A stretch of DNA of 57,208 nt, the filler included, from Trichosphaerium sp. ATCC 40318 (Eukaryota > Protista > Tubulinea): assembly GCA_038496445.1 (NCBI GenBank). It is 2 parts of 2 records of this genome, joined end to end, with 100 filler letters (N's around TTAATTAATTAA, not from the genome) between each part and the next. Parts side by side here need not be neighbours in the genome. Positions count along the whole stretch, not along the records: positions 1 to 25,648 come from JALMLS010000262.1; 1 more part is not named here. One strand, given 5' to 3'. Position 1 is the first letter of the stretch, and each line of letters starts with the position of its first letter. This document shows, piece by piece, positions 996 through 25,648 of this stretch. Under the pieces are notes generated by a model. It saw nothing but the letters and a program-made list of their open reading frames with translations. It did no database searches and had not been told where the DNA came from. A program made the position numbers and the translations under genes.

Positions 996-2084
996 ATGGT
1001 AAGTGTGCCTAACTCAATTAGTATAGCCTGATATGGTAATACTTACTCTTATATCATTAATAAAGTTTTTGTCATCTTTAATTTTAACCTCTAATTCCTC
1101 TAATGTCTCACCAAAACATTTACATAATAAGGTCTCAAATACACTCCATGGCATCAATTTTGCAAAAAGACCTGTAGCACCTTTGTGATATTCACTATAA
1201 ATGAGTAAGTATATATATTGTAATGTATTAACTTACATAAACCCATATCTTTCACCATTACCATCCACTACAGCACCATATTGAATTATATATTCTTGTA
1301 GCTTTCTGAAAGTGTCATAATGATCTTCTTTTGCAATACAAAGCCAATCCTCTCCTAATAAAGATATTAAATCAAATATAATAAAAAATAAATAATATTA
1401 TGACAATGGATCGGTCCGATCCGTTTACGAAACAAACAAATATATATTACAGAACGGATCAGTTCGATCCGTTTACAAAACAAAAATTAATATATTTCGA
1501 TAATGGATCAGTCCAATCCGTTTACAAAACAAAATAAATATATTTTGATAATGGATCGGTCCGATCCATTTACGAAACAAAAATAAATATATTTCGATAA
1601 TGGATTGGTCCGATCATTTACGAAACAAACAAAAATATATTTCGATAACAGATCGGACCAATCCAACTATCAAAAATTATTTTTTTATTTATATATAAAA
1701 TATAAATATTTTCAAAATAATATTTTGGTGATGGATCGGTCCGATCCAAATATAAAACAAAATAAAATTTGTTTTACTAACGGATCGGTCCAATCTGTTG
1801 TCAAAATATAATATTATATGTTATATATAACATAAAAACTTAAGTCAGCAAAAGTAAACATTCAATGAATTCCATAAAATTTCTCAAAATCAAAAAACTC
1901 TTCAAATTGATTTCTTTTAGGCTTATTAGCCTTAATTAATTTTAAAAGCTTAATTTTAAAGGTTTTAAATTTATTTGAGTACCTATTTTATCTTTTAGCT
2001 CTTTAGCTGCCATTTTGTTCCCTGAGGCTTCTTGAGTGTGTGATGTCTTCAAGGCTAGCTGTATGTGCCTGCTGTGCTTCTCAT
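996..2084 (-). pseudogene. 5' fragment of the unknown multi-exon gene (copy of 17719-18812), cut at 995 by the TIR element
   Basis: Inverted copy of the first exons of the 17719-21899 gene. Confidence 0.7.
1406..1797. repeat. Array of 8 palindromes (GGATCGGWCCGATCC-like), mostly 48-49-bp period
   Basis: Copies at ~1406, 1454, 1503, 1551, 1600, 1648, 1731 and 1780; inverted copy of 18008-18402. Confidence 0.95.
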
Positions 2085-2306
2085 CAATTAATCAAAGTCA
2101 AAATAAGTTCGTCGTCCGCGATATTTTCATAACAGAGAAAACTATGTTATGAAGTTACTATGATTCGACTTGGGCATTTTTTTTGTTTTTTTTTGAATAT
2201 TGAACTTTTATTAAAAAAATAATGTATAAAAAATATAATGAATTGGAGAGAAAAACTTATATCATAGAAATTTGTTTGTTTAGTAATTAATTATAAACAT
2301 ACAAAA

Positions 2307-4940
2307 CTATATTATAAGGAAAAAAACTGATTTTTTCACAAATCCTAACTTTGTTCCTTGACTTTCCATGACTGTACCAATGCACATGCTTGTTACACAC
2401 TCATATACAAAGACATTCCACTTTTACCGAACAAAATACAAATACATTTTTTTTTAGATTCCAATTGTGGAAGACGCCAAGCTTTAAAAACTGTCCTTGC
2501 TGATGCCGATACCTTCCAAGTACCATCCTTTGATTTAACAGTGTTGTACCAAATCCATTTGGCATGAAGCACTTGTTTATCAAGGTAAGGCATCGAGGCA
2601 TCCAAACTTAATTTTTGTTTATGAGACAACAGGTGTGTTCCTTTTAAATACTCTAATAAAAAGATTAAACCAATGACGTGTAATAAAATCAACCATACTT
2701 AAAAACCACACCATTTTTTCTCTTCTATAAAATGCTGGTGTTGATACAGTTGTAGTTGTCGAGTTATCTTGTTCAATCTTCAAGGATCGGCACACCTCAT
2801 CAAATTTTCCATTGTATGAAAGCAATAGCCAAGGAATTTCTTTACTTCCTATATCTCTATTTTAAATGTTAATATACACCAAATGGTTGTTCATTACTCT
2901 ATTTTATCATGGTTTTTAGATGAGGCTTTTCAACTTCTAATGGTAGCGTGTTTTGACTCACAGGCATATGTACTAATAATAAAATCACTTTGAAATAAAA
3001 CACTTTTCCAACTACATACCTAAAGTGTTTAAACACTCCAAACTTTCTACACATGTACTCGTAATGGTAAAAGACATGAAAGTTTATTGTATTGATGTTT
3101 AAGTCTAAAAATAAGCATTAATTGAAACACAATGTTAAGACAAAGTACCAGGAAAACAAACAGTGATTTTATGCATAAGTCGCTTGTAGTGTTCTGTCAA
3201 CGATGCCACCTGTTCTTCATACAAGTAATCTTTTGTGTCAATACTATATAAAACAGTAATTCTTTCCTAGTACAGGTTTAAACAATAACATATTGTAGTA
3301 AATACACACCACATTGTCATCAAACGCTTAGGTAAGATGTTTCGAAAAACGAGAGTAGCCATCTGAAGAAAAGAGCGTGTATCAACTCCATCCCAACTGA
3401 CATCCACCATGCATCCTTTATCATTCCACACCGTTTCATTCTATGATTTTAATTTGTCAATTGTGAAGGATAAAAAGTCTTGTATCACTTACTTGCCAAG
3501 CTTTTGTTTTGACGTCTGATGTATTTGATTCTGTTTTGTATTTTCTTACGAAAAGGTTTTATTCCTTGTAATTGTTCCATAAATCTTAATGTTTCAATGA
3601 TTATTGTTTGTCCTATGTCCAATATGATGTTATGAAACGGACAATAAGGAGAGTCCAAAAAGAAATCAAAATTGCACTTTAAAAGTTTGCTAAAGGGCGA
3701 CTAAACAAACATTAGACAATAAAAAACCCAGTCCAAGCAATCACCTGTAAGTTAACGCTGTAACATGAAGTGATGTGTTTGTTGTAGGAATACTTGGCTA
3801 AGTCATCCAAGGTTTCTTGTGTGTTACGATAAGCAGCAATAAGTGCACTGGGATTAGTTGTATTTACTTAAAGAATCTTTCTCACACGGCATATTCTGCA
3901 TGGATGATAAGATGTGGTAGACATCATCGCTGTTTACAAGTGTCAATAGCAAAATATAATACATAAACTCACATATAAGTCGGTTTGATCCTGGACTATC
4001 ACCAAGTATCTTTGTCAACCTCAAATAAACTGTATAATACTGCACAATTTGTTAGTTCAAACTTTTGTACATTAACACCTAACCTTTTGTTCACTTTTAA
4101 TATAACACCGCATGCCGTTATAAACATTCAAAAAATCTTGTACTACGTGCTCCAACAAATCTTCTTCATGGTGACACTTTGGCAATACAGCAATCATCAT
4201 TTTGCCTGTGGTACCTGCGCTTTAGGCAAGTTCCATACAACAAGGTACAATGGACCAAAACTGTCTTTCTTGTCGTATGTAAAGTCATCTTTGCTTATGT
4301 ACGCTTGGTTTAACATGTGAGTATACAACATTTCAATATGCTACTGTAATCCCATACCTGGAAGCAAAATGGTGTTTTTTTTATCCGCTTGGTACTCTTC
4401 AAGTACATCATGAAAAACTCGCTTGATTTGGGTACCTGTTTCTGGACCTCGAAGCACATTTTTAACTGTTGTTAAACTGTCATCTCTTACAATGGATACA
4501 GTAGAAGGTGTAAACGACACACATTCTGCTATGCTATCTCTTTTATGTAGGTCATAAAGAGTTCTTTTAATGTGTTCAGAAGGTGCAAAGAAAGGTATAG
4601 AGATCTTGGATATAATGGCGTTTGTTTTCTTATTCCTCTTTGAAACTGTAATCTTCTTGGTTTGAAGCTAAGCAAAAACTAAACTGGTCAACTTTTTGTG
4701 CAATGAACTAAAATTGTTGTTTGTACCTTATTCTTTATCACGCCAAACAATTTGCCAATGGAGCAGCTTATTAAATCTAAACGGATTGTATTAACAAACA
4801 GTACAACAGTAATGGTAGCGTGCTTTTTTTAGGCATGCCAAAAGAGGGCAGTACTGCGTTAAACAATGTCCGAATCTTTTCAACAATATTTTGATAACTT
4901 TTTCCATTTTCAAAGCAAATAAAAGATAGCCAAACATTTC
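2307..4940 (-). pseudogene. 5'-truncated copy of the CACTA/EnSpm-like transposase gene
   Basis: Inverted duplicate of 14854-17495; lacks the C2H2/acidic N-terminus. Confidence 0.75.
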
Positions 4941-13160: not shown

Positions 13161-16100
13161 TACCCACAAAAGACTATAAAAGGCGATTCTGTATATTGTA
13201 GAGACTGTAAACGGTTTTATGAATGCAAATACTATTGGTACAGGCATATTAAAAAGCACAAGCATCATTCGGCGACCTTTAGGGAAGTTGACGACCACGG
13301 TGGTTTGTCCGGCACGTTTTTACCACATTTATGATGTAAATGTTTAATTGTTGTTTATAACGTTTAGGCAACTCTCACTCAAGCGATGACATGGAAATAG
13401 ACTACTATCAAACGGGATCAAACATGTTAAATGAAGTTCACATTGTTGCTACAGGTCTAAAAAAATATACCAGTTTTTTTGGTATATACCACTTTTATAC
13501 CACTTTTTTATACCAGTTTTTTATGGTATATACCAAAAAAAGTGGTATATTTTGACCGAAATATACCAAAAAAAGTGGTATATTGACCAAATATACCAAC
13601 AATATACCAAAAAAAACAGGTATAAAAACAGAAAATATACCACTTTTTTTCACCAGAAAAAAAAAAATATACCACTTTTTTATACCACTTTTTTTAGGTA
13701 TATACCACTTATATACCACTTTTTTATACCAGTTTTTCATGGTATATACCACTCTTATATACCACTTTATGCCTACTTATGGTACACCTGCAATTCCAGA
13801 AAATACACTTTATTTAATACACAGTTTGTGAGTTACAAGTTTTGGACAATGTCCACTACAGTTACATTACTATGGGCGTCTGGAAAATTCGTCCATCTCC
13901 ATGAGCTTGCTGTACCTACTGTAAAAACATGCTGCGCACCTAATAAAAGTGGTCCCACCTGAATCTATCAATTACTAAGGCCTACGGAGGTCGGTTAATG
14001 TATATCAAACGAAAATAAAATAACACTTTGTCTGGTACCCACGAACGTCTGTATAATACCTGCAATATAGTTTCCTTAATGTTGGTACTGGAATCAGGTC
14101 CTGCGGTTTGAATGAGCTTGGTTTGGTTAGATTCTATCATATACTAAGGTCCCTACGCACCGTTCAATGTATGACGTCTATGATCGTTCAACAAGAAAAC
14201 CCATTACCAAAAAGCTCCTTAATGACCTTCTTGAAGCATACCATAAAAGTGGTATATACCAATAAAAAGGTGGTATATACCACATACCATAAAAAGGTGG
14301 TATATACCACTTTATATACCATTTTTAGAAGGTCTCATTATGTGAATAAAAAGTGGTATATACCACTTCCATATACCACTTTTTTATTCACTTAATTTCT
14401 AAAAAAAGTGGTATTTCAAAATGGTATATACCAGTTCATATACCATTTTGTTGAAAAAAGTGGTATATACCATAAAAAAACTGGTATATACCACTTTAAT
14501 TTTTAGACCTGTACAAGTGATGGAGAAAACAATATAAATGATCAAGAAAGCGACGCAAGTGATACAAGTTCCGACAGCGATTCCTCTAGCGACTCTGAAC
14601 ATATTTTTGACAACTCAGCCTACGAATATAATGAAGGTGACTATGACAATGTAGAGTTGTTTTATAACACCAATGAATCAAATGACATTTCATCACATGA
14701 GCAAGTAAATGAAAGTGAATTCTCTGGTACGATACTGTGTTTTATTTAATGTTTATTCATTGCACAGATGAAAATGAACAACAAAGACTGGAGCGAGAAA
14801 ATAGACCACCATTGTTTGCACCTAAAGAAACGTTAGCGAATGCTACCCCGGAAGAAATGTTTGGCTATCTTTTATTTGCTTTGAAAATGGAGTACAAGTT
14901 ATCAAAAGTATTGTGTGAAAAGATTCGGACATTGTTTAACGCAGTACTGCCCTCTTTTGGCATGCCTAAAAAAAGCACGCTACCATTACTGTTGTACTGT
15001 TTGTTAATACAATCCGTTTAGATTTAATAAGCTGCTCCATTGGCAAATTGTTTGGCGTGATAAAGAATAAGGTACAAACAACAATTTTAGTTCATTGCAC
15101 AAAAAGTTGACCAGTTTAGTTTTTGCTTAGCTTCAAACCAAAGAAGATTACAGTTTCAAAGAGGAATAAGAAAACAAACGCCATTATATCCAAGATCTCT
15201 ATACCTTTCTTTGCACCTTCTGAACACATTAAAAGAACTCTTTATGACCTACATAAAAGAGATAGCATAGCAGAATGTGTGTCGTTTACACCTTCTACTG
15301 TATCCATTGTAAGAGATGACAGTTTAACAACAGTTAAAAATGTGCTTCGAGGTCCAGAAACAGGTACCCAAATCAAGCGAGTTTTCAATGATGTACTTGA
15401 AGAGTACCAAGCGGATAAAAAAAACACCATTTTGCTTCCAGGTATGGGATTACAGTAGCATATTGAAATGTTGTATACTCACATGTTAAACCAAGCGTAC
15501 ATAAGCAAAGATGACTTTACATACGACAAGAAAGACAGTTTTGGTCCATTGTACCTTGTTGTATGGAACTTGCCTAATAGCGCAGGTACCACAGGCAAAA
15601 TGATGATTGCTGTATTGCCAAAGTGTCACCATGAAGAAGATTTGTTGGAGCACGTAGTACAAGATTTTTTGAATGTTTATAACGGCATGCGGTGTTATAT
15701 TAAAAGTGAACAAAAGGTTAGGTGTTAATGTACAAAAGTTTGAACTAACAAATTGTGCAGTATTATACAGTTTATTTGAGGTTGACAAAGATACTTGGTG
15801 ATAGTCCAGGATCAAACCGACTTATATGTGAGTTTATGTATTATATTTTGCTATTGACACTTGTAAACAGCGATGATGTCTACCACATCTTATCATCCAT
15901 GCAGAATATGCCGTGTGAAGAAAGATTCTTTTAAATACACTAATCCCAGTGCACTTATTGCTGCTTATCGTAACACACAAGAAACCTTGGATGACTTAGC
16001 CAAGTATTCTTACAACAAACACATCACTTCATGTTACAGCGTTAACTTACAGGTGATTGCTTGGACTGGGTTTTTTATTGTCTAATGTTTGTTTAGTCGC

Positions 16101-17495
16101 CCTTTAGCAAACTTTTAAAGTGCAATTTTGATTTCTTTTTGGACTCTCCTTATTGTCCGTTTCATAACATCATATTGGACATAGGACAAACAATAATCAT
16201 TGAAACATTAAGATTTATGGAACAATTACAAGGAATAAAACCTTTTCGTAAGAAAATACAAAACAGAATCAAATACATCAGACGTCAAAACAAAAGCTTG
16301 GGCAAGTAAGTGATACAAGACTTTTTATCCTTCACAATTGACAAATTAAAATCATAGAATGAAACCGGTGTGGAATGATAAAGGATGCATGGTGGATGTC
16401 AGTTGGGATGGAGTTGATACACGCTCTTTTCTTCAGATGGCTACTCTCGTTTTTCGAAACATCTTACCTAAGCGTTTGATGACAATGTGGTGTGTATTTA
16501 CTACAATATGTTATTGTTTAAACCTGTACTAGGAAAGAATTACTGTTTTATATAGTATTGACACAAAAAGATTACTTGTATGAAGAACAGGTGGCATCGT
16601 TGACAGAACACTACAAGCGACTTATGCATAAAATCACTGTTTGTTTTCCTGGTACTTTGTCTTAACATTGTGTTTCAATTAATGCTTATTTTTTAGACTT
16701 AAACATCAATACAATAAACTTTCATGTCTTTTACCATTACGAGTACATGTGTAGAAAGTTTGGAGTGTTTAAACACTTTAGGTATGTAGTTGGAAAAGTG
16801 TTTTATTTCAAAGTGATTTTATTATTAGTACATATGCCTGTGAGTCAAAACACGCTACCATTAGAAGTTGAAAAGCCTCATCTAAAAACCATGATAAAAT
16901 AGAGTAATGAACAACCATTTGGTGTATATTAACATTTAAAATAGAGATATAGGAAGTAAAGAAATTCCTTGGCTATTGCTTTCATACAATGGAAAATTTG
17001 ATGAGGTGTGCCGATCCTTGAAGATTGAACAAGATAACTCGACAACTACAACTGTATCAACACCAGCATTTTATAGAAGAGAAAAAATGGTGTGGTTTTT
17101 AAGTATGGTTGATTTTATTACACGTCATTGGTTTAATCTTTTTATTAGAGTATTTAAAAGGAACACACCTGTTGTCTCATAAACAAAAATTAAGTTTGGA
17201 TGCCTCGATGCCTTACCTTGATAAACAAGTGCTTCATGCCAAATGGATTTGGTACAACACTGTTAAATCAAAGGATGGTACTTGGAAGGTATCGGCATCA
17301 GCAAGGACAGTTTTTAAAGCTTGGCGTCTTCCACAATTGGAATCTAAAAAAAAATGTATTTGTATTTTGTTCAGGTAAAAGTGGAATGTCTTTGTATATG
17401 AGTGTGTAACAAGCATGTGCATTGGTACAGTCATGGAAAGTCAAGGAACAAAGTTAGGATTTGTGAAAAAATCAGTTTTTTTCCTTATAATATAG
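13161..17495 (+). pseudogene. Intron-containing CACTA/EnSpm (Transposase_21/Plavaka-like) DDE transposase with N-terminal C2H2 finger, interrupted by a MITE
   Basis: C-x2-C-x12-H-x3-H (CRDCKRFYECKYYWYRHIKKH), acidic linker, then ISKDDF..DSFGPLYLVVWNLP, ILGDSPG, HPCRIC and DIGQTIIIE, matching the CACTA-type D..S...Y....NLP / GD.P / C..C / D..H...E motif series. Start codon not found. Confidence 0.7.
13452..14511 (+). mobile_element. 1060-bp MITE, 12-bp TIR CAGGTCTAAAAA, 2-bp TSD (TA), dense subterminal GGTATATACC palindromic repeats
   Basis: TIRs at both ends; TA at 13450-51 and 14512-13; excision restores the frame NEVHIVAT/SDGENN; second copy at 24848-25648. Confidence 0.93.
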
Positions 17496-18812
17496 TTTTG
17501 TATGTTTATAATTAATTACTAAACAAACAAATTTCTATGATATAAGTTTTTCTCTCCAATTCATTATATTTTTTATACATTATTTTTTTAATAAAAGTTC
17601 AATATTCAAAAAAAAACCAAAAAAAATGCCCAAGTCGAATCATAGTAACTTCATAACATAGTTTTCTCTGTTATGAAAATATCGCGGACGACGAACTTAT
17701 TTTGACTTTGATTAATTGATGAGAAGCACAGCAAGGCACATACAGCTAGCCTTGAAGACATCACACACTCAAGAAGCCTCAGGGAACAAAATGGCAGCTA
17801 AAGAGCTAAAAGATAAAATAGGTACTCAAATAAATTTAAAACCTTTAAAATTAAGCTTTTAAAATTAATTTAAGGCTAATAAGCCTAAAAGAAATCAATT
17901 TGAAGAGTTTTTTGATTTTGAGAAATTTTATGGAATTCATTGAATGTTTACTTTTGCTGACTTAAGTTTTTATGTTATATATAACATATAATATTATATT
18001 TTGACAACAGATTGGACCGATCCGTTAGTAAAACAAATTTTATTTTGTTTTATATTTGGATCGGACCGATCCATCACCAAAATATTATTTTGAAAATATT
18101 TATATTTTATATATAAATAAAAAAATAATTTTTGATAGTTGGATTGGTCCGATCTGTTATCGAAATATATTTTTGTTTGTTTCGTAAATGGATCGGACCA
18201 ATCCATTATCGAAATATATTTATTTTTGTTTCGTAAATGGATCGGACCGATCCATTATCAAAATATATTTATTTTTGTTTTGTAAACGGATTGGACTGAT
18301 CCATTATCGAAATATATTAATTTTTGTTTTGTAAACGGATCGAACTGATCCGTTCTTGTAATATATATTTGTTTGTTTCGTAAACGGATCGGACCGATCC
18401 ATTGTCATAATATTATTTATTTTTTATTATATTTGATTTAATATCTTTATTAGGAGAGGATTGGCTTTGTATTGCAAAAGAAGATCATTATGACACTTTC
18501 AGAAAGCTACAAGAATATATAATTCAATATGGTGCTGTAGTGGATGGTAATGGTGAAAGATATGGGTTTATGTAAGTTAATACATTACAATATATATACT
18601 TACTCATTTATAGTGAATATCACAAAGGTGCTACAGGTCTTTTTGCAAAATTGATGCCATGGAGTGTATTTGAGACCTTATTATGTAAATGTTTTGGTGA
18701 GACATTAGAGGAATTAGAGGTTAAAATTAAAGATGACAAAAACTTTATTAATGATATAAGAGTAAGTATTACCATATCAGGCTATACTAATTGAGTTAGG
18801 CACACTTACCAT
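14854..18812 (+). repeat. Right arm of the ~3.95-kb inverted duplication
   Basis: Reverse complement of 996-4940. Confidence 0.97.
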
Positions 18813-21800
18813 TTCTTACAAATAACAAACAACCAATTGAATTTATAGATGCCATACAATCAGATTATAAAGCATCTCCAAAAAGGTGGTTTAACCTTGT
18901 TAAAAGAAAAGCAGCTGAGACAGATGAAGCCTTTTTCACACGATTTTCCAGAAGAAAGCATATTTGGAGTCTTCTAATCAAACTTGAACTATTTCCAAAA
19001 GCTGTTGGTCTACAACTTGCTAATGGTAACCACTATAAAGGGTTTTTAATGAAATACTACAGAAAGTCTTTGATGATATCAACTATGAAAGAGACAGATA
19101 ATTATCAAAAGTATGTATTAGTTTATTGCAATTAGTTAATCTACTATAGGTATTTGATGACAACTGGCCCAAGTTGTTTTACATTACCTGATAATTACCA
19201 AGAATTATTTAAAGAAGATGATCATTTTATTGATATTAGCAATAAAACATACACACCGGCAGAAAAAGCAAAAAGTTTGACAGTTCCATCAATGTCAGAC
19301 CTTGTGTGCTTTTTACCAGTCAGAGGTTTTAATTTAGAAAACTTTTTATTACAAATGGCAGCAGCTACAAAAGCAAGTCCACCACACAATAGAAAAATAT
19401 TATTGGTCGAAAGTGGCACTTTATATGTACCAGGTGGAAGGAAAGGAAAACCTCAAGTTCATCTTGGTTTTTGTCTTGGTGATGGCTCTCATGGTTTACT
19501 AGCATCTTTATGGTACAAATACTCATACACAATAACTAATATTTATTTTAGTATTTTGAAAAAGGATTTTCAATTAAAAACTGTGGGTTGGTTGTCTGTG
19601 CGTGTGAGATTAAATAGCATTATATCCTTTTGTGCAGCATGGAACAAATTGAGACAGGCCACAAAAGATAGTCATCTTTTAGATAAAATGATATTTTGTT
19701 ATGATAAATTTTGTGAACAGTATGGATTAGAAAAAGTACGATATCAATATAAATCATATCATTTACCTAAATGTAGAATGGCGATTTTTCTGTGACAAGA
19801 AAGTCTCCTAGGAAACCTGGTGTAACTTTTCAATCAGTAAGATTATTTTTATTTTCTATTGTACTAATAGTTTAGGTGTATAACTTTTGTGATCTTGGAG
19901 TGTCAAACCTAGTAAGAACTCCCAGAGAGTTTAAATTGATTGTAAGAGGAGGGACTTTTTTGCATGGTATAGATAAAGATCTTATTGAATTGATGGGTTT
20001 ACAAGCAACCTCAGTACAAATAGTTGCACATGCACATAACTACTAACTATCTATATAGTTAAATAGACTGCCTACAGGCTTTAATCAAAGATGGTTTGGA
20101 GATATATTTTGGGTTAAAGCTCCTAAAAGGATGAGAATAGCAGTACGTACAAAGTTCAAACATTAGCAAAACTAAATTTGTAATAAAATACATGATGTTT
20201 TGTCAACGGATCGGACCAATCCGTACACGTAATATATCTTATAATGTTTCACCAACGGATCGGTCCGATCCGTACACGTAATATATCTTATAATGTTTCA
20301 CCAACGGATCGAACCGATCCGTACACATAATATATCTTATAATGTTTCACCAACGGATCGAACCGATCCGTTTACGTAATATATATTTCTGTGTTTTATT
20401 AACATGTCAAACTGATTTGTAGAAAAAAAGTTAATATGTTATATTATTAATATGTTTAGTTTTTAAAAGCTGTTGGAAATAGACAGTATACATGTGATCC
20501 CAAAGCTAAACAGAAGTTTAAACAATACATAAATGCAAAAAACACACTAGAAGCTGTACAATTTTTTCAATAACACAATATTAACATATATTTGTAGTTA
20601 TGGGACTTTGTTAAAACACACTTAAAACAAGACCCTTTAACGCACAGAGATATCATGGCTTTAGATGATACAAATCACCTAAAAAGGCTATACACATTTG
20701 ATCCCACCCTATTATTTCCTCCTGCAGAAGGTTGGCCACCAGCAAAAGATAAAGACCATCCTTTGGCTCAACAAAGGAAAAGCACAGAGGAATTAAACTA
20801 TTCAAATGATTCAGTAACAGTGGCAATGGGTTATAATTGCTTACAAGCATATGACAGCTATTATTCTGAGCACAAGCACATTAGTATACACTTTCAATTT
20901 ATAATATTAATACTAAATATATACTAGGAAAAACACTTCATAGCAGAGTTATTGAAAATATGAAGAAATACAAGGAAAAAAAGCAGAAACAAACAAAGTC
21001 AGCTAAACAAAGCAGAAAACCATTAACTGACCATGAAAAAGCTGCTACATCTCATTGGAGCAAACATTATGGTAAAGACAAGACAACATTGGCAGGTAAA
21101 ACATCATTTTATACATTTAAATACATAACTATTTGTAGCCAAAGTAAAAGTATATGATAATTATAAAAGACAAAAAAGATTCTCATCAATCTAATAAATC
21201 CAGCGAAAATGCTGATATTGTTGTTGATGATGATGATGATGTGAATATGCAAGATGTAAACACTTCAAGTTCAACAAAAAGAACCTCTACAAAGGCACAA
21301 AAAACATCAAGTAGAAAAACAAAACAGAAAGAGGAAGAAGATGAGTCATCTTCATCATCAACAGAACATGACAGAGAAGATAATGAATTTAATCCTTCAG
21401 ATTCTGAACAAAACATTGATGATGTTTCAAAAAAAAATACAGATTCTATGTTTGAGCCATCTCAATCTAAAAATGTTGAAGAACAAATGACAATGGTTAT
21501 AGATAAAATATTGGAAATTGGAGAATTTGTTTCTTATTCAAAACCAGAAGATTCAAATGTTGTGCAAATCACAATTGATGTACATCCTAGCAATGTTGCA
21601 TATCAAAAACTTATTTCTAGTAAGTAATACAAAATATATCCATATTTATAATATTAGGTACTCCTTTTATACAATCACAAAGGCAAATAGAACATACACC
21701 AAGTTATGATGAAAGTGAAAGTGACAGTGAAAATGAAGATGATGAAGAAGAAGAAGAAAAAGATGTGCAAAAAGGACCTGATATACAGCGAATATCTCCA

Positions 21801-21899
21801 AGGAAAACACAAAAAAAGAAAAGCCTGGAAAACCACCAAAAGGCCAACCAACAAAGAAAAAAAGAAAAAGAATTGCAAAAAAATGAACACAGTATATGA
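17719..21899 (+). CDS. Large multi-exon protein of unknown function with charged low-complexity C-terminus; probably the accessory ORF of the Sola-like element
   Basis: About 13 exons join in frame at GT..AG sites (…KIGEDWLCIAKEDH…, AHLPFLTNNKQ…, YLMTTGPSC…, VYNFCDLG…, LWDFVKTH…). Convergent with the transposase, stops ~53 bp apart, and shares its intronic palindromes. Start uncertain (17719 or 17791). Confidence 0.72.
18008..18402. repeat. Intronic array of 8 GGATCGGWCCGATCC-like palindromes (~49-bp period)
   Basis: Lies in predicted intron 17822-18453. Confidence 0.93.
20206..20371. repeat. Intronic array of 4 palindromes, exact 49-bp period
   Basis: Copies at 20206, 20255, 20304 and 20353 within predicted intron 20143-20459. 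Confidence 0.95.
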
Positions 21900-21952
21900 A
21901 GATGTGATATATTTTGTTAGTTAGAAAAATTAAAATAAAATTTATTTACTTT

Positions 21953-24847
21953 TTACACATGATGTACTCTGTTTTCTATATCTGGTCCTCCAATAAATGC
22001 TGTTTGATCATCATTTGTATTTTCCATTTCTCTAATAATAGCATCTTCATCTACATCCATGTTGGAATTGTGCTTTAGAATATCACTTATTGTAGGTTGT
22101 TCTTCATATCCATCAATTGTGTATTGTTCTCTATGAAACAAATTCCATAAATCATTCTCTGGTGGTGGAGTATAGACTGTATCTGTTCTACCTTTAGGTG
22201 GACGACTGGCAGGCTTAGGATACAATGTAGTGGGACTTGTTGTATCTAGTTGAAATTGGCGTGCAAGACTGTATATATCCCAAGCTTTGTTTGGTTTAAG
22301 TACTCGTTTGTTTACAACCATTTGTTTTGTATCTTCATCAAATGTAGAATAAGTGCAAGGCAAGTTGCTGAAAAAAACCAATGGTGTATTTTTTGCTCTA
22401 CTGTTGTGCATATCAAAGATATGTTTTTTTGCTCCTATTGCTATTTCTGATGTAGCTACCATGTGCACCTTGCCATTGGTTCCTTTTAAAATCCTATGGG
22501 GAAAAAACATGTAAGTTATACACTTTAACAGAATGCATACATTATTTCTGCCATTCCTCTTAAGTGTAGTGCTTTTTTATTGCCTTCAGTATCTTTACTT
22601 GGTGTTCTCCATCTTTTAATGAAAGGTTTGATATTTTTAAATTCAGGTTGTTTCATTTCTACTCCACTCACATTTTCAGGTGCATTATATAAATCATGTA
22701 TGTGTTGCATAGTAGTAAGCTCCCTGTACATGAAGTTAATCTTTTTTAACAATACAATTGTATGTAAAAATATACCTTGTGGATGATGCTAGCCTGACAG
22801 TGGCAAAAGCACGATCATTAGGCAAAAATGTATGGCCAATTCGTAAATACCTCAAAGTTACAGATAGAAACATATTTCTATCAACAAGCTCGCAATAAAA
22901 CTTTATCAGCTCCCAACATTTGTTTTGAGCTGTGCAATTATCAGACCACATCACCAAATGCCTTTTTTTATTCTTTATGGACATAAGATGCTTGTAAATC
23001 ACAGAAATAGTTTGATGCGCCTTTTTTTCTCCTATATATTCAGACCAATAATAGATTGTAGTTTGTTTTGTGCTAGCATCATAGATGCCAAGTGGATTTA
23101 TTGATAGTGACCTAAGCTCTCAAAATTAGTCTTATGATTGTAACTTTATAATACTTTTTTGTACCTCAAATAAAATTGTATCTGTGGTTGGTCTTTAAAC
23201 TTTGGCATGCTTGTCATTTGCATATAATCTATTGACAACACTGTGGATGTGGCTCTTTTCCAAGTCTCATACAAATGCCAAGTATCATAGTAACGTGGAT
23301 TAAAAAGGCCAATATTTTTTGTTGTGTGAAATGAAGGCTCACTTTCATATCCCTCCCAACTTACTAAATATCGAACATCTGTAATTTTACGCTTTTTTCT
23401 TCTTTTTCTTAGTGGAGGGGCCTTTCGTTTTTTAGTATTACTTTGTGGTAAAATTGAGTGTTGATCAATCTCTGTTCTGGTGTGCACAGTCATACCCAAT
23501 ATGCCATTTATGAAATACTCTTTGTTTTCATCTTCTATTGTACCATATTGCCAGCCTACTGGATTGTTATACCAATCTGCATGTCCATTTGTTTTAATTG
23601 CACTTTTCCAATAACTTTCTAACTCTATAATATCTTTCACATTTTGTTTCATATATAACAGTGCAGGTAGTTTTAATTTAGTTTGAGTTTCTTCATCAGT
23701 GTGTTTTAATTCTTCTCCCATATCAAAACGCATAAATTCAGTACGTCTTGTTGCTATTGCATGGTGTATAAACTGTCGTTCTTTTAAAGCTTTTCTTTGT
23801 TGGATAGTTATTGTTCTGTCTGCATATTTGCATTTATACCAAAAACAAATGTTACATGCATCTTCTCGAGGTTTTTTGAATTTAAACACACCTTTTGTAT
23901 ATTCCATAAAATATCTACAATAAAAATAAACTTTACAACAATCATCAATAAATACCTGTGAAATGTACTATATGAAAGTACATTATTGTTTGGATCAATG
24001 TTTGGATAATTTTCCATATCTTCTTCAGCAGGCATTGCTTTGTGCCAGTTATTTTCCTTGATTAAATTTTTGTACATAATTGTTTCAGTAAGACCTACTG
24101 AAAAATACCAGTATGTTTTATAATTTGCCAAAGCATAATGACTTTTTTGTACTCTGTGTTTTTTTATGAAGGTATGTATTGTTTTTATCATAGTAGCACT
24201 TTTTCTAAATATTTCATAAGTTTAGACAACATAAAACAGAATGTTATATAGACGGATCGGTCCGATCCGTTAACGAAACATACAATATATTGTTATGACA
24301 AATATTTATTGTAAGCTTATAAGTGATGGATCGGTCCGATCCGTATACATAACAGATGATGCGTAGTTACTTCAATCAAACGAGTACCTATTTGATTTAT
24401 TATTGTGATAGCCTCTTTTATCTTCAACAAATCCTAGTTTTTCTGTTCTAAACTTATTGATTGAATGCAATGGCCCATGACTTATGCCATATACACTTTT
24501 AAAAAAAGAACAACATACTTTTTGTTTAGTGCCATTTCCATAAAATATATAATAATTATTTGATGTTTTTCCCTCTTTTTGATATATCCCTCTGTTCAAA
24601 ATACCAATTTTATCCTTATAACTACCAGCAAAGTAATAAATAGCTTTTAAAGCATATAAGTAATCTTTGTCAAATTTGCTCCAACATTGTCCATTACATT
24701 TACATCTATGTATCTTTTTTTCCATGAATTTTTCCCAATTTTCATCAGTACATTTTTCTGGTTTAATCACTTCTTTGAAATCTACACACAATGTTTCATT
24801 TTCTGCTTGTTTTGAAATTAATTGACTTTCATTGAATATTCCTGGAT
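21953..24847 (-). pseudogene. Sola1-like DDD DNA transposase with inserted chromodomain-like segment; 5' end interrupted by a MITE
   Basis: Motifs CKC..QCW, KVCCSFFKSVYGIS, DKRG, KPREDACNIC, SIDYMQ..P....QFYLR, YWSE, WSDNCTAQNK and GHTFLPNDRAF; multi-exon; frame stays open up to the MITE junction at 24848; one A-run frameshift at ~23020. Confidence 0.75.
24252..24344. repeat. Two GGATCGGTCCGATCC palindromes in transposase intron 24205-24387
   Basis: ACGGATCGGTCCGATCCGT at 24252 and ATGGATCGGTCCGATCCGT at 24326. Confidence 0.93.
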
Positions 24848-25648
24848 CAGGTCTAAAAATTAAAGTGGTCTCATACCAGTTTTTTCATGGTATATACCAC
24901 TTTTTTCAACAAAATGGTATATGGACTGGTATATACCATTTTGAAATACCACTTTTTTAGAAATTAAGTGAATAAAAAAGAGGTATATGGAAGTGGTATA
25001 TACCACTTTTCATTCACATAATGAGACCTTCTAAAAATGGTATATAAAGTGGTATATACCACCTTTTTATGGTATGTGGTATATACCACCTTTTTATTGG
25101 TATATACCACTTTTATGGTATGCTTCAAGAAGGTCATTAAGGAGCTTTTTGGTAATGGGTTTTCTTGTTGAACAATCATGGACGTCATACATTGAACGGT
25201 GCTTGTCCTCCTTAGTATATCATAGAATCTAACCAAACCAAGCTCATTCGAACCGCAGGACCTGATTCCAGTACCAACATTGAGGAAACTATATTGCAGG
25301 TATTATACAGACGTTCGTGGGTACCAGACAAAGTTTTATTTTATTTTCGTTTGATATACATTAACCGACCTCCGTAGGCCTTAGTAATTGATAGATTCAG
25401 GTGGAACCACTTTTATTAGGTGCGCAGCATGTTTTTACAGTAGGTACAGCAAGCTCATGGAGATGGACGAATTTTCCAGACGCCCATAGTAATGTAACTG
25501 TAGTGGACATTGTCCAAAACTTGTAACTCACAAACTGTGTATTAAATAAAGTGTATTTTCTGGAATTGCAGGTGTACTATAAGTAAGCATAAAGTGGTAT
25601 ATAAGAGTGGTATATACCATGAAAAACTGGTATAAAAAAGTGGTATAT
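24848..25648 (-). mobile_element. Second (inverted) copy of the CAGGTCT MITE, truncated at the contig end
   Basis: Begins CAGGTCTAAAAATTAAAGTGG; near-identical to the reverse complement of ~13710-14511. Confidence 0.93.

Follow-up and report, generated by a model that had tools for sequence, protein, structure and literature searches.

A chromodomain-like module inside a Sola1-like transposase gene of Trichosphaerium sp. ATCC 40318

Results

The sequence analysed here, referred to as the window, is a stretch of 57,208 nucleotides from Trichosphaerium sp. ATCC 40318 (GenBank assembly GCA_038496445.1) that joins two parts of this genome. The first part (positions 1 to 25,648; JALMLS010000262.1) carries, on its minus strand, a gene for a Sola1-like transposase, one exon of which encodes a chromodomain-like module. 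Such a module had been noted in a preliminary description of the locus, made from the sequence alone. The minus-strand translation of positions 23263-23520 reproduces exactly the peptide quoted there (EYFINGILG...KKRKAPPLRKRRKKRK...VRYLVSWEGYESEPSFHTTKNI...), which is located, as described, within an open reading frame (ORF) of 253 amino acids at 23146-23907, downstream of a PxxDxCxxC motif (PREDACNIC) and upstream of the block containing the first catalytic aspartate (SIDYMQ). This ORF represents a single exon (exon B) of a larger minus-strand gene with six exons, all of which remain open in frame when each junction is checked, and five introns, all of them of the GT-AG type and in phase 2 (Table 1). 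Assuming that translation starts at the methionine codon at position 24725, the gene is predicted to comprise about 800 codons. All protein searches and structure predictions described below were performed exon by exon.

Table 1. Features of the transposase gene and of the module encoded in its exon B. Positions count along the whole window.
Feature	Position	Strand	Basis or remark
Sola1-like transposase gene, six exons	21953..24791	-	six-frame reading; each junction checked
Exon 0, Cys-rich N-terminal region (HRCKCNGQC...)	24388..24791	-	tblastn to L001, E 1.5e-22
Intron 1, 183 nt, GT..AG	24205..24387	-	palindromic GGATCGGTCCGATCC repeat unit present twice
Exon A	23956..24204	-	homologous to L001, L004 and L002
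Intron 2, 41 nt, GTATTT..TGTAG	23915..23955	-	junction check
Exon B: zinc-finger-like PxxDxCxxC motif, helical region, chromodomain, first catalytic Asp	23165..23914	-	
PREDACNIC (PxxDxCxxC motif)	23845..23871	-	conserved in P0002-P0004 and L006 (hhalign E 9e-9)
Chromodomain-like module	23251..23520	-	sequence profile, AlphaFold2 model, fold searches
Module strand 1, EYFINGILG	23494-23520	-	
Additional 39 residues in the loop between strands 1 and 2	23379..23495	-	alignment gaps in all relatives
NLS-like basic core of the loop, KKRKAPPLRKRRKKRK	23386-23433	-	
Module strand 2, VRYLVSWEGY	23347-23376	-	
Module strand 3, PSFHTTKNI	23311-23337	-	
Module C-terminal helix, PRYYDTWHLYETWKRA	23251-23298	-	
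SIDYMQ, first catalytic Asp block	23218..23235	-	D-Y invariant; corresponds to Sola1 block FDL..P
Intron 3, 53 nt	23112..23164	-	P0001 reads through at the same position
Exon C, RNase H-like core	22776..23111	-	Pfam DUF7869, E 6.4e-11
WSDNCTAQNKC, carries second Asp	22916-22948	-	exon C
GHTFLPNDRAF, carries third Asp	22805-22837	-	exon C
Intron 4, 52 nt	22724..22775	-	spliced length agrees with intron-less L003
Exon D	22541..22723	-	comparison with L001; junction check
Intron 5, 47 nt	22494..22540	-	junction check
Exon E	21953..22493	-	coding 21956-22493, stop codon 21953-21955

The protein into which the module is inserted had been described as a Sola1-like transposase, and this assignment, to a transposase with three catalytic aspartates (DDD), is supported by sequence comparison. 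Its core matches Pfam family DUF7869, which was not mentioned in any paper found in our literature search, and it can be set against the RNase H-like cores of Sola1-1_AP, Sola2-1_HM and Sola3-1_HM given in the supplement of Majorek et al. (2014; PMC3985635). Compared by eye, the window core and the Sola1 core share five collinear blocks ((F/I)D..P; FY.R; Y.W.E..G+; SDNC..QN+; GHT), and the patterns typical of Sola2 (DFAENY, TDGCAGQYKN, TSHG) or Sola3 (SDNASSYHGN) were not seen. The DDD residues are provided by D230 in exon B, the aspartate of WSDNC and that of LPND; by hand count, the first two are about 78 residues apart, as they are in Sola1-1_AP. Pfam searches detected no rve or reverse transcriptase domain in the transposase exons or the other window ORFs examined.

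An exhaustive search of 1.8e9 representative proteins at an E value of 0.001 or better returned only four relatives of exon B (P0001-P0004; E 8e-36 to 1.5e-13), one from a Logan run and three representing diverged paralogues from a single ENA metagenome (28-34% identity to the window protein). The segment is present in all four of them and thus kept in every family member found, rather than being missing from intact members, an outcome that the preliminary description had considered. Disregarding its loop, it is 51, 36, 33 and 26% identical to the four relatives, values comparable to those of the N-terminal region (38, 33, 33 and 35%), so that, at the sequence level, the segment is no less constrained than the rest of exon B. 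A word-index protein search gave no match for the 253-aa ORF, only P0002 and P0004 for alignment A1 and only P0002 itself for P0002, and a metagenome scan with the exon-B alignment yielded no relatives. A second metagenome scan that used the catalytic core as query led to a distant relative, L006, with 26% identity in the core, and diverged relatives also occur in JGI metagenomes.

Two lines of sequence evidence support the identity of the module as a chromodomain. When a 69-position profile of five homologous segments was searched against the PDB, all 19 matches were chromodomains, with CDY1 (E 0.0044) and HP1 (E 0.011) as the best ones, followed by CBX1/5/7/8, CDYL, SUV39H1, Swi6 and Rhino. 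The alignments extend from the EY.. strand through the W.GY motif into the third strand, and a longer profile likewise matched chromodomains exclusively (13 of 13). In addition, L006 contains a canonical chromodomain (Pfam Chromo, 46.1 bits, E 4.7e-12, profile positions 1-53 of 53), encoded by an exon that lies between a PPKTDCCNTC motif and the first aspartate. The exon upstream of it shows homology to the window family (hhalign E 9e-9), and the chromodomain itself can be aligned to the segment of that family (hhalign E 1.3e-3; BLASTP E 0.013), with the BLASTP alignment continuing collinearly into the first-aspartate block. The window segment taken alone gives a chromodomain match that is not beyond chance, with a single-sequence PDB search retrieving the chromodomains of CDYL, CDY and Swi6 at E 0.27-1. 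It is the family profile, together with the canonical Chromo domain that L006 carries in the equivalent place, that lifts the match above chance.

No chromo module separates the CxxC motif from the first aspartate in three other members of the superfamily, L005, L007 and L008. In L005, a 489-aa uninterrupted ORF with a DUF7869 match, the intervening linker measures only 61 residues; the corresponding lengths are about 150 (L006), 163-166 (close relatives) and 205 residues (window protein). The hhalign comparison joins L005 to the window family from just before the first aspartate onward (E 5e-13), pairing its AADMQ with SIDYMQ. The module is thus, as far as these alignments tell, an insertion relative to the chromo-less members of the same superfamily, and by the same comparisons it is canonical in the lineage of L006 and diverged in that of the window. 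Including L006, six chromo-bearing sequences were available in total.

The structure predicted for the segment supports this assignment. An AlphaFold2 model based on five sequences, with P0003 as the first row, shows three strands followed by a short helix of low confidence, with a predicted local distance difference test score (pLDDT) of 65.7 overall and 70-82 in the core. A chromo fold, whose absence had been envisaged as a possible outcome, is predicted, and the matches of the model are mostly chromodomains, at weak scores. A Foldseek search of the PDB ranked CBX7, HP1alpha, Rhino, CBX2 and SUV39H1 at the top, at probabilities of up to 1.00, a template modelling (TM) score by target of about 0.6 and a root-mean-square deviation of 2.2 A over 49 columns, and an exhaustive VIA-align search placed the chromodomains of CHD1 and CHD6 at ranks 1 and 2. 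In the ESM Atlas, PF00385 was among the common families in seven of the ten clusters listed, and an eighth was a Ty3 Gag-Pol cluster; a cluster combining rve and Chromo was also among the neighbours. On their own, these structural data, which derive from a predicted model, are supportive, not decisive.

The positions of the aromatic cage, corresponding to Y24, W45 and Y48 of HP1, were assigned by alignment. As the preliminary description had stated, all three are kept in the window segment (Y134, W187 and Y190 in exon-B numbering). The same Y/W/Y set is found in P0001-P0003, and hence in four of the five close members, P0004 has R, W and F, and L006 has Y, W and W. Across the six sequences, the first position is Y in five, the second is invariably W, and the third is always aromatic (Y, F or W).

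A peculiarity of the window copy is the loop connecting strands 1 and 2 of the module, which contains 39 additional, highly basic residues where the relatives have a loop of only 12-17 residues. The corresponding 117 nt open with GTATGA, close with TTACAG and are divisible by three. An intron at this position was rejected as the main interpretation, as the initial MTV aligns with conserved residues of the relatives; moreover, 12 of the 24 GTA[TC]..[TC]AG pairs in exon B are in-frame by chance. We therefore read positions 23379-23495 as coding, subject to RNA evidence. A retained or alternative intron is possible at this site.

Several features of the gene are shared with related sequences. Exon order is collinear between the window gene and the related contig L001, in which the gap corresponding to intron 1 is only about 60-75 nt long, and the position of the exon B/C intron is common to the window gene and P0001, since P0001 reads through the junction at the same codon. 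Exon 0 contains a single in-frame methionine codon, at 24725, and its frame remains open to 24884; the tblastn similarity to L001 reaches 18 residues upstream of this methionine. A repeat arm (B') starts at about 24848, on the 5' side of the gene, and the window copy may be 5'-truncated by it. As for the relatives themselves, L006 contains a long poly-Asn tract in its N-terminal exon (375-1214), suggestive of an AT-rich, protist-like host, as well as a convergent Thr/Ala/Pro-rich ORF downstream of the transposase (3412-3999), an arrangement that resembles the window without detectable homology. In L003, the same peptide (…RRASSFGPKK / …RRCSSFGPKK) occurs at both ends of the transposase region (58-130 and 1480-1536), hinting at a repeated sequence that flanks or interrupts the gene.

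The surroundings of the gene are rich in repeats. Two long inverted repeat pairs are interleaved: one (996-4882 versus 14916-18812) has arms of about 3.9 kb with 91-100% identity, mostly 100%, and the other (13711-14511 versus 24848-25648) has arms of at least 0.8 kb with 98% identity and extends to where the piece ends. Possible explanations are very recent copies of transposable elements (TEs), an artefact of assembly, or long terminal inverted repeats (TIRs) belonging to a large composite element of which the transposase gene is a part. The B and B' arms also hold clusters of the short palindrome GGTATATACC(AC) (13474-13751, 24860-25120 and 25590-25648), those in B' directly upstream of the transposase gene. 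A further type of repeat, 49 bp in length with the palindromic core (A/G)CGGATCGGTCCGATCCGT, forms tandem arrays at 1375-1830, 17976-18431, 20159-20449 and 24221-24369, including the two copies in intron 1 and four copies about 1.5 kb past the 3' end of the gene. These units could be transposase-binding subterminal repeats, or else an unrelated miniature inverted-repeat transposable element or satellite. The portrayal of the locus as a TE nest is accurate insofar as it is repeat-rich; this setting does not constitute evidence for chromatin targeting.

Convergent to the transposase gene, at about 20600-21900 on the plus strand, lies a gene of several exons (ORF 21154-21627 and those on either side) separated by short GT-AG introns. 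Its acidic, Ser/Lys-rich product matches no Pfam family, and the related loci contain no equivalent. The gene might be a second one carried by the element; a tblastx comparison of 18813-21955 with the related loci revealed no common second gene. A 213-aa ORF at 19154-19795 (plus strand), between repeat arm A' and a 49-bp array, has no Pfam match either, and Pfam searches on nine other window ORFs as well as Rfam and tRNA scans of the window were negative.

Discussion

Our results indicate that the segment is very probably a true chromodomain homologue inserted into a Sola1 transposase. We propose that a lineage of Sola1-type DDD transposases took up a genuine, now diverged chromodomain of the HP1/CBX/CDY type, which would today separate the N-terminal zinc-finger/helical region from the RNase H-like catalytic core. 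Its aromatic cage would bind a methylated lysine of a histone tail, of the H3K9me or H3K27me type, and the bound histone would tether the transposase or transpososome to silent chromatin, thereby biasing insertion toward heterochromatin, by analogy with chromovirus integrases. The 39-residue basic loop, which is predicted to be exposed on the hairpin of strands 1 and 2, could serve as a nuclear localisation signal (NLS) or provide an additional contact with DNA or the nucleosome. That the module reads methyl-lysine and biases integration strikes us as a nearly even proposition, leaning slightly toward the negative; taken as a whole, the combination of homology and methyl-lysine targeting is reasonably likely to be the best explanation. 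The most specific version of this idea, namely an old, undescribed Sola1 clade with an internal, intact-cage chromodomain that reads H3K9me or H3K27me and directs insertion into heterochromatin, is a tentative suggestion that we would sooner doubt than affirm.

Several observations weigh against this proposal. The comparison with Pfam PF00385 Chromo suggested in the preliminary description turned out to be only partly favourable: while the family profile matched chromodomains exclusively, the window segment reached 13 bits (E 0.1), as against a gathering threshold of 25.1 bits, with a match confined to the YLVSWEGY strand, and none of the four close relatives gave a Chromo match, either as whole proteins or as segments. 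In the window family, [ST][FY][HRQ] takes the place of the canonical TWEP motif, and P0004 lacks the first cage aromatic. AlphaFold2 produced an unusable model (pLDDT 46) for the whole of exon B from five sequences, the Foldseek matches all had E values of 0.13 or worse, and VIA-align Z scores did not exceed 4.9, with small barrels resembling the oligonucleotide/oligosaccharide-binding (OB) fold reaching similar values. At the level of the locus, no convincing TIR pair flanks 18813-24872, only palindromic 49-bp arrays and low-complexity pairs; the gene abuts the repeat arm at about 24848, and the piece ends at 25648. Neither did we find 4-bp target site duplications or a second transposase copy within the window. 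Given these results and the lack of an upstream methionine codon, the window copy may be immobile or domesticated.

The marginal Pfam E value, the Z scores below 5 and the interleaving of OB-fold proteins would fit an unrelated small beta module in which YLVSWEGY happens to mimic the chromo signature. Such a chance resemblance is largely refuted and, in our estimation, very improbable, given that each of the 19 profile matches is a chromodomain, down to E 0.0044, that a canonical Chromo domain, within homologous flanks, occupies the homologous position of L006, and that the Atlas neighbours of the model are mostly Chromo clusters. The low Pfam score and the loss of TWEP are also compatible with a chromodomain by descent that has ceased to read histone methyl-lysine and instead binds DNA or RNA, mediates dimerisation or contacts partner proteins, as do the chromo-shadow, CHD1, cpSRP43 or group II chromoviral domains, or acts as a structural spacer in transpososome assembly. 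The missing cage residue of P0004 fits this idea, as does the fact that chromo-shadow, CHD and cpSRP43 neighbours appear at the same Z as methyl-lysine readers; furthermore, whereas integrases carry their tethers C-terminally, this domain is internal and adjoins the catalytic core. Nevertheless, we regard a loss of reader function as unlikely, albeit worth serious attention, because the cage positions are kept in four of the five close members and in L006, and the best sequence matches, CDY1, HP1 and CBX, are methyl-lysine readers.

A different view would be that the gene derives from a Sola1 transposase but has been domesticated by the host, with the chromodomain recruiting its product to chromatin for a host function. 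Six exons that are open in frame, intron positions common to L001 and P0001, the single copy in the window and the failure to find TIRs around the gene could all be accommodated in this way. However, the DDD residues and the Sola1 blocks are intact, the existence of three paralogues with 28-34% identity in one metagenome suggests a diversified mobile family, and the locus is situated among very recent repeats, one arm of which has possibly truncated its 5' end. Moreover, intron-bearing Sola1 elements that have long, gene-carrying bodies are on record (PMC12477816). Domestication appears rather improbable.

If the domain does read H3K9me or H3K27me and direct insertion into heterochromatin, the window protein would be, within the limits of our literature search, the first example of a DDD transposase with a demonstrated histone reader built in beside its catalytic core, with the window copy adding an NLS-like loop of its own inside the chromodomain. 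Chromatin-guided insertion is well documented for long terminal repeat (LTR) retrotransposons and hardly so for cut-and-paste transposons, and a chromo-bearing Sola1 lineage would make it testable in the latter with one small domain and a few point mutants. If targeting to silent chromatin proves true, the transposase would also be a possible starting point for a heterochromatin-directed insertion tool. On the practical side, the domain of the window lineage is too diverged to be detected by Pfam-based screens for fusions of readers and transposases, which miss such cases; its recognition required a family profile and a distant relative.

A close functional parallel is provided by the integrases of chromoviruses (Ty3/gypsy), such as MAGGY and Tf1-type elements, whose chromodomains are reported to direct insertion toward heterochromatin (Gao et al., 2008, as cited in other papers). 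As in these systems, the enzyme with which a mobile element inserts its DNA bears a chromodomain, so that the expected logic, by analogy, would be a tether to methylated H3, and the Atlas neighbours of the segment model include chromovirus-type integrase clusters. In contrast to them, the window enzyme is a cut-and-paste Sola1 DDD transposase rather than a retroviral-type integrase, and its chromodomain is internal, N-terminal to the catalytic core, instead of being fused to the C-terminus of an rve domain. A chromodomain is also found at the C-terminus of the rve integrases of Maverick/Polinton elements and adintoviruses. These resemble the window system in that a DNA mobile element encodes an integrating enzyme with a chromodomain, and differ from it in enzyme family (rve), domain position and element type. 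Adintoviridae with a Chromo and rve combination are mentioned in the covered passages of Grau-Bove et al. (bioRxiv 10.1101/2021.11.30.470311).

The same passages report that Chromo and PHD readers are fused to TE proteins, including DNA transposases, with a hAT transposase joined to a CBX/CDY-type Chromo domain in the sponge Ephydatia and further reader fusions in cnidarians (Grau-Bove et al., bioRxiv 10.1101/2021.11.30.470311). Chromodomain fusions of TEs as such are therefore known. As in the Ephydatia protein, the window gene combines a cut-and-paste transposase with a captured histone-reader domain of the CDY/CBX/HP1 type. It differs from the hAT fusions, as far as these passages describe them, in its superfamily, Sola1, which they do not name, and in the conservation of the domain across members with 26-50% identity from at least four data sets. 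Our literature search found no paper joining Sola to a chromodomain, the two key Sola papers being outside the texts covered. What appears to be new here are the superfamily, the internal position next to the catalytic core, the deep conservation of the domain and its invisibility to Pfam. Compared with canonical Sola1 transposases (Sola1-1_AP and the core of aphid XP_003249065), finally, the window protein shares the collinear arrangement of the five core blocks and the DUF7869 match, and it is set apart from them by about 100-130 extra residues, the chromodomain included, between the RRxEF block and the first aspartate.

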